Counted from the stretch's first letter, positions 39,674-43,163 are shown. The stretch: DNA of 52,577 bases from Salpingoeca rosetta (GCA_033442325.1 JAWQFM010000004.1:1013222-1065798), one strand, 5' to 3'. Notes: a model not told the origin generated them from the sequence alone. Made by a program: numbers and translations.

Positions 39674-42600
39674 ATGGTGGAGGAGGTGGAGGAGCTTATG
39701 GCAGCGACCAAGCTAACGGAGGAAGGGCAGCAGCTGCTTCGCGCCATCGCCAACAACAAATGCAGCGAATATGTGGAGTAAGTCCACCTCCCATGCGTGC
39801 ATGGTGGGTGGGCTGCTGCTGTTCTGCCTTGTCCTCTTGTCGAGATGCTGGACCAGAGAGATGAAATTGATCCGCCAACTCATAGCACTCTTCACCATGG
39901 TGTCATGCAAAACAAACCAAACCCGCACTTGTGGTTCCCCGCCCGTTGTGCCGTTTCAACTGCACGTATCCAGTCTCAGCAGCAGGAGCTTCGGAGATGA
40001 TGAAGCCCGCGCAATCGCTGTTGCTCTCCGCCGCAATACCCGCCTCAAGGCGTTGAGGTCAGCATTGTAGAATATCAGGGAGCCGGTTGTGTGTCCATGT
40101 AAATGGATGTCCTACCTCAAGGATGAAGTGTTTGTGAACGTCAAGTTGCCTGATGAATGGTGGAGATGGATGGAGACGCGTGTGTCTGAGATGAGTTGGG
40201 ATGGACACTACGCATCACGACCATGGGGTTCCTCCCAATGCATTAACATGTTTGTTCCTTCACGACAACTGCGTTGACTTGATCTGCTGTGTCCGCTTCA
40301 GTTTGAGCGACAATTCCATTGGCCCTGGCGGTGCTGCTTCGTTTGCACATGGCCTGAGGGACAACACAGTGCTGACAGAGTTGCGGTTCGTGGATTGTGT
40401 GAAACAGAGTGTGGCATGGGTGATGTGTTGGGTGTGGGGGCCACGTTCAAGCGTACTCACGCACACACACGCACACACACACACACGCACGCACACACAC
40501 ACACACACACACACACACACACACACACACACACACACACACACACACACACACCTCGCTCGACTACGATCGCGTACGCATCAACAGTTTCATCAACAAT
40601 TCCTTTGGAAATCAAGGCGCAGCGTCCATGGCAGAGCTGTTGATGGACAACCATGTCATCACCAAACTCTCGTCAGTTATTTGTGTGTGTGTGTGTGTGC
40701 GTGTGTGTGTGTGTGTGTGTGTGCGTGCGTGTGTGTGTGTGTGTGTGTGTGTGTGTGTGTGTGTGTGTGTGTGTGTGTGTGTGTGCGAAGTCGTTGACGG
40801 CGGTTGAGCGAACAATTCAGTCGCTCATACTCCCCGCTTCTGTTGTGATGACGCCTTCGCAGGCTTCGCAACAACTCCATTGGACCCGAAGGGGCAAAGG
40901 CGCTGGCCGAAATGCTGCGCCACAACACGACACTGCGAACGCTGTTGTAAGAGCTTCTGCGCCACACCATGCACTTGCCAGTGATGGTGGTTCCTTGTAC
41001 GCGCGTGAAATGGCGTGAGGTTTTCACGTTCAGCACATGACGAGACATGTTCTCACACACACATGCCGTGGACACTTGACGTCATCACTCGCAACAGCCT
41101 GTCAGATAACTTCATTGGCCCGGGTGGAGCAGAGGCTCTGGCCACGATACTGAGCGAAAACGACTCATTGACAACACTCCAGTATGTTGTCCCATGTGCG
41201 AAGTCGGTCGCCTGTTACGCCTCGTTGTCTGAATACAATACTCACGTTTTGTGTGTGTGTGTGTGTGTGTGTGTGTGTGTGTGTGTGTGTGTGTGTGTGT
41301 GTGTGTGTGTGTGTGTGTGTGTGTGTGTGTGTGTGTGTTAGTCTGAGTGGAAACAGCATCGGCAACGACGGCGCAGCTGCCTTGGCCGGCGGTCTCAGAA
41401 GCAACACGGGCCTACACAAGCTCGAGTGCGTTCTTACACTGACGTAATGGAAGGGGACTGGTACCTGCAGTGGCTGTTATTGGTGGCTGTGACATGTGCT
41501 CATCCACCACTTCCTTACATCTCTCTGTACTGTCATGTCAGCCTTTACCTCAACGACATTGGGCCAAAAGGCGCGGTCGCTTTGGCTGCTGTCCTGGCTC
41601 ACAACCAGGATTTGGAATATCTCAGGTGTGTACCCTAAGTCCCACACGCACAGCATAATCACCCGCTTGTGTATCATTGCTCTGTCATTTTTGTGCCGCG
41701 CCTTCTTCTTCAGCACCAGAGAATGTGCTCATCTGGTTGACTTTGGTAACTTACGCGTGTGCTAGGCTGCTCTCGACGCGCTCGTCCGTGCACATTGCAC
41801 CACTCGACTTGGCTGACCCGGACCAAGTCGACATGACCAGAGAGGACCGCGAAATTAGCGGGCACTGGTTCGTCTGTTTTGTGTGTGTGTGTGTGTGTGT
41901 GTGTGTGTGTGTGTGTGTGTGTGTGTGTGTGTGTGTGTGTGTGTGTGTGTGTGTGTGTGTGTGTGTGTGTGTGTGTGTGTGTGTGTGTGTGTGTGTGTGT
42001 GTGTGTCTGTGTCTGTGTGTCTGTGTGTCTGTCTCTCTCTCTCTCTCTCTCTCTGTGTGTCTGTATGTCTGTCTCTCTGTCTCTCTGTCTATGTCTGTGT
42101 GTGTGTGTGAGAGAGAGAGAGAGTGTGTGTGTGTGTGTGAGGGGTTGCATGAGTGTGTTGTCGGTTGTGAAAGCGTGGGATGACACGCCTTCACTCTGCT
42201 TTGAATTATCTGTGCCGTTATCTGCTCTGTTCGCTTGCTCACGCTTCGCCTATTGATGCTACCTGTTTTGCCCTCGCCTTTGCTCCTCCATCCCCTGCTT
42301 CTCTACCCCGTTTCCCTTTCTGGCTTTCTCTGTTGTGTTACCAGCTCTTACGCCAGGCTGGCGGCTCTACCGCTGCGCAACGAAACCTTCTGCAGCCGTT
42401 TGGCCACCGTATTCACGCTGTTGCCATCACGTGGTGCGACCAAAAGCTGATGGCGTTCAATGGGGCCCTCCACCTCAACAAAGTGCGCTTTCGCGGCCAT
42501 TTGACAAGCACCAACCATCCGTTCTCGCCAACCTATCCGCACGACACCATCAGCGGCGAGGCCACGGACCCGGAGGACAAGGCTGTGCTTGAGTATGCGA

Positions 42601-43163
42601 CGTGGCCGCACCTCTACTGCATGCTGGCGCCGGCGCTGTTGCTGGATGACCCACCCATTCGCATTCAGCGCGTGTTCCATGGCGTAACGTGCCTTGATGC
42701 TGTGCTCGGGGTGTTGGGCGGGGACATCTCGCAGTTGCATCAGCCCACCAACAAGCCGTGGTTTGGGACTGGGTTCTACTTCACCCCAGACCTCGATTAC
42801 GCTCTCGGCTTCACTAAGGAATGCAAGCTTGAACATGGGCAGCACATGCCACCTGATCTGCGGTGTCTTCAAATGGAGCCGGGCAAGTCGTACCGAATCG
42901 TGTTGGCATGCGACGTGCAATACGGCAACCCGTTTCCGGTCAGACGCGAGCTGCAACAAAGTGATGCCTCGCCTGCACTGCTTACACCCGGTCACGACGC
43001 GCGCGTGACAGTCGTTGACTTTGCCAGCGGCGACATCCATCAGGCACAAATCCTCAAGTCCCACAAGCAGTGGAACGAAGCTGCCAGGGTGCCCGTGATT
43101 GACCTTGCCATTGAGGATCCGTCTTGTGTGCTTGTTCGTGCAATCCTTGTGTTTGCTTCTTAG
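39674..43163 (+). CDS. Ribonuclease-inhibitor/NLR-type LRR protein fused to a C-terminal PARP-like ADP-ribosyltransferase domain, 10 exons
   Basis: Exon 1 [30 protein letters not shown]. Seven exactly 84-nt phase-2 exons, each one 28-aa LRR (39974-40057, 40302-40385, 40588-40671, 40863-40946, 41098-41181, 41342-41425, 41542-41625; e.g. [27 protein letters not shown]). Linker exon 41766-41871. Terminal exon 42345-43163 with [42 protein letters not shown]. The last junction uses a weaker GTCTGT donor. Confidence 0.8.

Follow-up and report, generated by a model that had tools for sequence, protein, structure and literature searches.

A leucine-rich repeat head and a PARP-like ADP-ribosyltransferase tail in Salpingoeca rosetta are probably the two ends of one longer gene

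We analysed a stretch of 52,577 nucleotides from the choanoflagellate Salpingoeca rosetta (GCA_033442325.1 JAWQFM010000004.1:1013222-1065798), referred to here at its full length as the window. At positions 39650-43163 of the window, seven leucine-rich repeat (LRR) exons are followed on the same strand by an exon for a putative PARP-like ADP-ribosyltransferase (ART) domain, ART1, which has a tandem paralogue, ART2, a short distance downstream. The original prediction, made from the sequence alone, had read this arrangement as an LRR solenoid fused directly to the ART, forming a one-component sensor-effector. Its GC content and microsatellite density are in line with S. rosetta DNA. The sequence occurs in 19 public runs from six studies, all of a single organism, and RNA contigs (X4 and X7, from two studies) and raw reads (X21) aligned to 39400-41879 were used to follow the transcripts. 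The features of the locus are as follows.

39611-39649, plus strand: 5' untranslated leader; X4 record 1 and X7 record 2 both begin at 39611, and no ATG occurs before 39650
39650-39777, plus strand: exon 1, 128 nt, with the start codon and a phase-2 donor; joint 39777>39974 in X4, X7 and X21
39974-40057, plus strand: LRR 1 exon; open reading frame (ORF) and splice reading, RNA
40302-40385, plus strand: LRR 2 exon; LRR_6 E 0.14, RNA
40588-40671, plus strand: LRR 3 exon; ORF and splice reading, RNA
40863-40946, plus strand: LRR 4 exon; LRR_6 E 1.6e-4, RNA
41098-41181, plus strand: LRR 5 exon; LRR_6 E 0.073, RNA
41342-41425, plus strand: LRR 6 exon; LRR_6 E 0.019, RNA, not among the pieces listed for X4
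41542-41625, plus strand: LRR 7 exon; LRR_6 E 0.005; RNA donor leads to 41845 or to an LRR-like exon outside the window (CCTGAAACGCAATG…)
41766-41844, plus strand: exon B, start of a conserved pre-ART module; in RNA preceded by …GAAGCTCGGGAACTCGTCAAGGGGCAGGCC and followed by 42345; donor in the window GA
41845-41867, plus strand: segment A, 23/24 nt; joined to LRR 7 in RNA; AG acceptor 41843-44, GT donor 41868-69
41880-42140, no strand: long (TG)n/(TC)n microsatellite in the last intron; the donor of the paralogue at locus L001 (see below) lies directly at its own (TG)n
42345-43163, plus strand: terminal exon with the remainder of the pre-ART module and the PARP-like ART1; 272 codons, AG acceptor at 42345, stop TAG at 43161-43163
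43164-43194, plus strand: short 3' untranslated region of ~30 nt; RNA contigs end at ~43190-43194 (X4 record 1, X7 record 4)
44173-44937 (within the stretch 44044-44973), plus strand: ART2, tandem paralogous ART domain, 37% identical to ART1 and not part of the ART1 transcript

All seven LRR exons are exactly 84 nt long, in phase 2 and bordered by GT..AG, and each encodes one 28-residue repeat of the RI-type consensus xLxLxxNxIGxxGAxALAxxLxxNxxLxxL. Five of them match Pfam LRR_6 when scanned singly (E 1.6e-4 to 0.14). The repeats begin 43 residues past the start codon, and exon 1 encodes the N-terminal motif …EELMAATKL…LLRAIANN…, which is typical of the protein family described below and colinear from residue 1 with its members P0032, P0007 and P0010. 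Six of the seven joints between exon 1 and LRR 7 are canonical and present in RNA contigs or reads; the remaining one, 40671>40863, is implied by adjacent contig coordinates only. The seven 28-aa RI-type LRRs of the original prediction are thus confirmed by exons, frames and RNA joints. Most of the introns contain (TG)n or (CA)n microsatellites. Upstream, a very long trinucleotide low-complexity run at 39100-39420 (poly-Asn in the minus ORF, poly-Leu/Cys in the plus direction) separates the start of the LRR gene from an ORF at 37630-39063.

At the other end of the locus, RNA contigs are 846-850 nt long from 42345 onward. The exon encodes the motifs RVFHG, GTGFYF and GHDARV, with the His codon at 42678 as exon residue 112, and the ART signatures named beforehand (among them RVFHG and this His) hold in both place and content.

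The connection between the two ends was examined in the RNA. Only one contig, X4 contig 1 (5,424 nt, depth 82), holds both the LRR and the ART exons. Its positions 4670-5424 comprise exon 1 and the LRR exons as far as 41625, and its positions 847-927 correspond to 41764-41844. The ART exon comes directly after these, starting at 42345 with CTCTTACGCC… and continuing to ~43190. The contig has 3,742 nt separating the LRR block from 41764-41844, of which at most 24 (41845-41868) are found on the aligned stretch. In X7 contig 4 the 120 nt ahead of 41764 are likewise foreign to the aligned stretch and end in …GAAGCTCGGGAACTCGTCAAGGGGCAGGCC, as is the case in three X21 reads, and four X21 reads run from 41625 into CCTGAAACGCAATG, in phase as the next LRR ('S LKRN…'). 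Both strings are absent from the whole window and from L001, a paralogous S. rosetta locus on GL832978.1. On the reading favoured below, the mature mRNA is ~5.4 kb long, and ~3.7 kb of it between head and tail (up to ~1,250 codons) is encoded nowhere in the 52.6-kb window. As 716+3,742 nt is divisible by three, which would happen by coincidence in one case out of three, the reading frame could continue uninterrupted for up to ~1,785 aa.

Direct fusion of the LRRs to the ART finds no counterpart in these data: a joint from the LRRs to the ART exon is present in no RNA record, and ~3.7 kb intervenes. What stands is that one assembled contig holds both domains; a one-component protein made of LRRs and ART only is not supported. 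The predicted junction 41871/42345 had the start of the ART exon right and the donor wrong, as the RNA junction is 41844/42345. An in-frame donor of the linker exon at 41826/7 was also considered and ruled out, as the RNA uses 41844.

Every RNA record that enters the ART exon passes through exon B. The translated end of the off-window part (EARELVKGQA) together with this exon aligns with the conserved module found ahead of the ART in every paralogue, …DAVWKFPQQLLAAVxxxxLSTRQSVHIAPL…VTELLRAAGG. Since the module spans the off-window part and exon B, a direct LRR–ART join would halve a conserved unit. This bears on the possibility that the locus truly encodes a short LRR–ART protein of 537 aa, for instance as a natural deletion derivative of some longer paralogue, and that the 5.4-kb RNA stems from a near-identical full-length copy elsewhere. 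The splice product implied by the genome (exon 1, seven LRRs, 41766-41844 and the ART exon) is open over 1,614 nt without an internal stop, the window is contiguous without Ns at the locus, and DNA-like runs contain 76-90% of the sampled words of the stretch. However, the joint 41625>41766 required for such a product was not seen above the reporting threshold in four runs, and the reported reads and contigs that splice out of 41625 or into 41764 connect to other sequence. The short protein would further depend on a non-canonical GA donor at 41845, it would lack the front of the pre-ART module, and it is not on record at 182-577 aa. We consider this explanation improbable.

We favour instead, with a probability of roughly 0.6, that the window contains the two ends of one gene from a choanoflagellate-specific family of the type repeat domain–signalling module–PARP-like ART, whose ~3.7-kb middle lies outside the window. 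The apparent direct LRR–ART fusion is most likely due to a collapsed or rearranged assembly around 41626-42344, or to a second near-identical locus; the two-domain architecture would then probably be a product of the local assembly, with a true protein about three times longer. The order of the small exons points to where the assembly may be at fault. In the transcript, 41845-41868 stands right after LRR 7, as seen in the X4 contig, in three X21 reads (one start) and by depth arithmetic, and exon 41766-41844 follows 3.7 kb later, whereas in the DNA they lie end to end with exon 41766-41844 first. Moreover, the donor of exon 41766-41844 is GA in the window, while the L001 paralogue reads …ACTGAG/GTGTGTG(TG)n at the same codon position (slash at the exon border). 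The microsatellite at 41880-42140 is likely the site of an assembly collapse or close to one. Most simply, the expressed gene would carry a short region twice, on either side of the missing exons, and the assembly would have merged the two copies at or near the microsatellite; the alternative to a collapse is a second, near-identical full-length locus.

Segment 41845-41867 itself may be an alternatively used micro-exon, as four other X21 reads skip it and proceed to the further LRR exon. Use of the segment followed by that exon would put a stop in frame.

A collapse at the microsatellite had been named beforehand as a scenario in which the LRR and ART exons would belong to separate genes. A collapse near 41880-42140 comes close to what the RNA indicates; a split into separate genes does not follow from it. 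Two genes, one LRR-headed and one ART-tailed, each lacking parts of its own and perhaps tandem paralogues, could nevertheless have been joined artificially, in the DNA through assembly collapse and in the RNA contig through a chimeric path. The order of segment A and exon B that is not colinear with the DNA would fit such a merger, as would the many similar paralogues in the family, among which a contig across two genes is no proof of a single transcript, and both ends are linked by one contig only. Against this, the switch points lie exactly at exon borders and the total length keeps the frame; the depth is a single value of 82 along the whole X4 contig; P0032 is the best paralogue of the head as well as of the tail; and within the family every LRR head of this type accompanies an ART tail. 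Two merged genes therefore appear unlikely to us.

Several points also weigh against a single gene with an off-window middle. A transcript order that is not colinear with the DNA means that something is wrong or duplicated, and the assembly itself shows no N gap within 41626-42344, the only Ns of the window being at 28711-28810 and 49560-49659. Only the de Bruijn contig X4 links head and tail, and an assembled contig does not prove that both came from the same molecule; the raw-read RNA runs are shallow (33 and 2 reads). A protein with a ~100% identical ART was not found in the protein collections at 150-577 and 623-1981 aa, nor among the 50%-identity representatives. Finally, we infer the content of the 3.7 kb, be it kinase or Roc–COR, by analogy only.

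This analogy comes from the family to which the tail belongs. An exhaustive, profile-free search of 1.84 billion representatives (E<=0.001) returned only 28 proteins, from S. rosetta, from transcriptomes of at least Microstomoeca roanoka and Didymoeca costata, and from unnamed ENA/Logan contigs. The S. rosetta members are annotated as 'TKL protein kinase', 'serine/threonine protein kinase' or 'PARP catalytic domain-containing protein'. In this family the ART sits at the C-terminal end or close to it, preceded by LRR_6–coiled coil–Pkinase, Ank–Pkinase, Ank alone or LRR–Roc–COR–TIR (PTSG_11903), and all full-length relatives pair a repeat domain with this ART. The tail in the window carries the signatures of the family (QRVFHG, VLxCDVxYGNPxP, GHDAHV, which reads GHDARV in ART1, and AEIVxxDPSCV) and matches S. 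rosetta members at E 1.8e-89 to 4e-95 with 54-60% identity. The head, with its seven LRR exons, supplies the N-terminal repeat domain and aligns from residue 1 of P0032 with 40% identity over 231 aa. The tail is closest to P0032 and P0007 (58%). No central module was found in the window: no kinase, Roc, COR or NACHT homology was detected in its 52.6 kb, and the transcript has the 3,742 nt between head and tail.

P0032 and P0007, LRR–coiled coil–TKL kinase–PARP-like proteins of S. rosetta (with PTSG_08612 and the kinase model upstream of it), have the same N-terminal motif and RI-type LRR head as the window gene. They also share the pre-ART module, the C-terminal ART (54-58%) and the intron position before …LL(R/H)xAGG. 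In contrast to these paralogues, the window encodes no coiled coil or kinase, the transcript has ~700 codons beyond what they would need, and the exchanges of the catalytic Glu for Asp and of His220 for Arg are confined to ART1. PTSG_11903 (P0013), an LRR–Roc–COR–TIR–PARP-like protein of S. rosetta, belongs to the same ART family (45% identity), and at 1,728 aa it is nearly as long as the product of ~1,785 aa that would fit the 5.4-kb transcript; its N-terminus, however, lacks the exon 1 motif of the window, which in turn has no Roc or COR homology. In the ART tree, ART1 falls into an S. rosetta clade in which its proximity to the kinase-type or the ROCO-type members is not resolved. By analogy with the paralogues, the missing middle most likely consists of more LRRs, a coiled coil and a TKL kinase, and Roc–COR(–TIR) is less likely. 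Taken together, the locus looks like a further member of an LRR–kinase/GTPase–PARP-like family with an assembly problem rather than a minimal architecture.

Two observations concern other members of the family. At L001 6147-11258, two annotated models, a 578-aa kinase and the 367-aa PTSG_08612 ('PARP catalytic domain-containing protein'), are together colinear with a single LRR–coiled coil–kinase–ART paralogue; a frameshift around 9615-9625 apparently splits them. PF27087 appears in the precomputed Pfam lists of P0007, P0009, P0010, P0012, P0018 and P0032; as these are the five LRR_6-matching members and P0032 only, this Pfam family probably describes the LRR head rather than the ART.

Assignment of the tail to the PARPs called for more than a single-sequence comparison, as the ART1 sequence alone matched neither Pfam nor PDB sequences (phmmer). 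The PARP catalytic family PF00644 has a Pfam gathering cut-off of 26.7 bits; ART2 scores 21.0 bits, relatives reach 11-26 bits and ART1 gives no score. A profile of 31 family members against PDB sequences recovered only PARP13, PARP4 and PARP16, with weak E-values of 0.05-0.5. In the structure prediction, ART1 is modelled with the fold of a PARP-type ART. The link of ART1 to the PARPs thus comes only from the family profile, the paralogue ART2 and the predicted structure, and these three agree with the PARP-like ART tail proposed originally. The fold is that of a PARP as predicted, yet the ART family falls short of the Pfam threshold for PARPs. Identity of the window ART to the human mono-ADP-ribosylating PARPs (PARP10, 12, 14 and 15) and the tankyrases amounts to 11-16%, and, unlike human PARPs, its family has its own N-terminal extension of ~100 aa and the invariant motifs VLxCDVxYGNP and GHDAHV. 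The literature searched does not describe the accessory domains of the family for PARPs. Because the best structural matches of the model are mono-ART PARPs (PARP10/12/14/15), mono- rather than poly-ADP-ribosylation would be expected of the tail.

The key residues of ART1 are H112 (in RVFHG), Y145 (in GTGFYF), Y152, D253 (Glu in the family) and R220 (His in the family), which places the His–Tyr–(Glu/Asp/Gln) residues of a putative NAD+ site in the right motifs. Across the 31-sequence family alignment, His112 is present in 28 sequences and Tyr145 in all 31, with Gly113 and Tyr152 also in place, and ART1 keeps all 12 invariant family columns. At the acidic catalytic position, at the start of the penultimate strand, 29 of the 31 sequences have Glu and ART1 alone has Asp; ART1 is also the only one with Arg for His in GHDAHV. 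D253 was equated with PARP1 E988 (PARP1 NEYIVYD…) by motif and secondary-structure position, not by residue-level superposition. In the H-Y-[EDQ] clade named by Wyzewski et al. 2021 (PMC7955679), Asp is among the residues permitted at the third position, and human mono-ARTs function with Ile, Leu or Tyr at the position of the catalytic Glu (table in PMC7955679). With an Asp that is within this clade, enzymatic activity of ART1 is plausible, though probably altered, and since Asp253 and Arg220 replace Glu and a near-invariant His, an activity weaker than or changed from that of the paralogues may be expected.

The same exchanges raise the question of whether ART1 is a pseudo-enzyme that serves as a scaffold or as a binder of NAD+ or ADP-ribose, with the chemistry left to the neighbouring intact ART2, 1 kb downstream, which keeps both the catalytic Glu and the His of GHDAH. 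No other sequence among the 31 has either exchange. The retention of His112, Gly113, both Tyr residues and every invariant column speaks against loss of function, as do the tolerance for other residues at the third position described above and the expression of the gene in RNA contigs and reads. A pseudo-enzyme seems possible to us, but doubtful. Either way, ART1 with Asp and Arg beside an intact ART2 offers a natural pair for probing the role of catalytic residues.

If the favoured reading holds, the product would most likely be a cytosolic multi-domain signalling protein. Its N-terminal RI-type LRR horseshoe may bind a ligand or partner or hold the protein in an auto-inhibited state, the central module (most likely a coiled coil and a TKL kinase, going by the best-matching paralogues) could dimerise or act as a switch, and the C-terminal PARP-like domain would transfer ADP-ribose from NAD+ onto targets or onto the protein itself.

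The combination of LRRs with an ART-like domain has a published precedent. LRRC9 contains an ART-like domain between two LRR blocks and was proposed to combine a sensor with a signalling module; its ART, in which the His, Tyr and Glu are missing, is a predicted pseudo-enzyme (Wyzewski et al. 2021, PMC7955679). Like the window gene, it joins eukaryotic LRRs to a PARP-related ART-like domain. In LRRC9, however, the ART is central, whereas in the window it is C-terminal (followed by the stop and ~30 nt of untranslated region) and retains the His, both Tyr and an acidic third residue. A sequence relation between the two was not detected in the searches made, and the window gene is not an LRRC9-like LRR–ART–LRR protein. 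With NLRs that have RI/NLRC3-type LRRs it shares the 28-aa RI-class repeats encoded one per phase-2 exon. Unlike in NLRs, the LRRs are N-terminal rather than C-terminal, and the unseen middle lies C-terminal to them. Scans of the window and of family members detected no NACHT or NB-ARC domain, in line with the NACHT-free reading of the window made at the outset, and the window gene is not an NLR.

A survey of PARPs covering choanoflagellates makes no mention of kinase or LRR fusions (PMC4245714), and no description of an LRR–kinase–PARP family was found in open-access papers and preprints. The ART family has expanded in S. rosetta and is joined there to LRR, ankyrin, kinase, ROCO and TIR modules. 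The same set of components serves innate-immune and stress signalling in animals and plants and is found here in a genetically tractable unicellular relative of animals. Nothing here shows an immune role of the window gene. The locus also teaches caution over an eye-catching two-domain architecture that is derived from an assembly alone.

ART2 lacks part of the N-terminal pre-ART sub-module (ITWCDQKL…AFNGA is missing) and pairs with PTSG_11903 (ROCO–TIR–ART) in the ART tree, with support of 91/81. As no obvious upstream exons of its own were found within 850 bp, it may be a fragment in its own right or serve as an alternative last exon. It is very unlikely in our view that ART1 (H-Y-D) and ART2 (H-Y-E) serve as alternative tails to a single LRR-headed sensor, or that the locus, an allele or a copy of it makes a kinase-less 537-aa LRR–PARP-like protein. 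In either case, the closest unicellular relatives of animals would have a natural, minimal ADP-ribosyltransferase gated by LRRs.

Further downstream, 45228-45791 (plus strand, in an ORF at 45204-46331) is 40% identical (E 3e-27) to residues 1026-1210 of PTSG_11903, which comprise the TIR domain and the following linker. This segment has no Pfam match of its own and is located 2 kb downstream, after ART2, whereas the TIR precedes the ART in PTSG_11903. A different gene accounts for a further LRR-coding stretch at 50286-52283 (minus strand), which is weakly similar to the LRRs of P0032 and adjoins the 100-N gap at 49560-49659.

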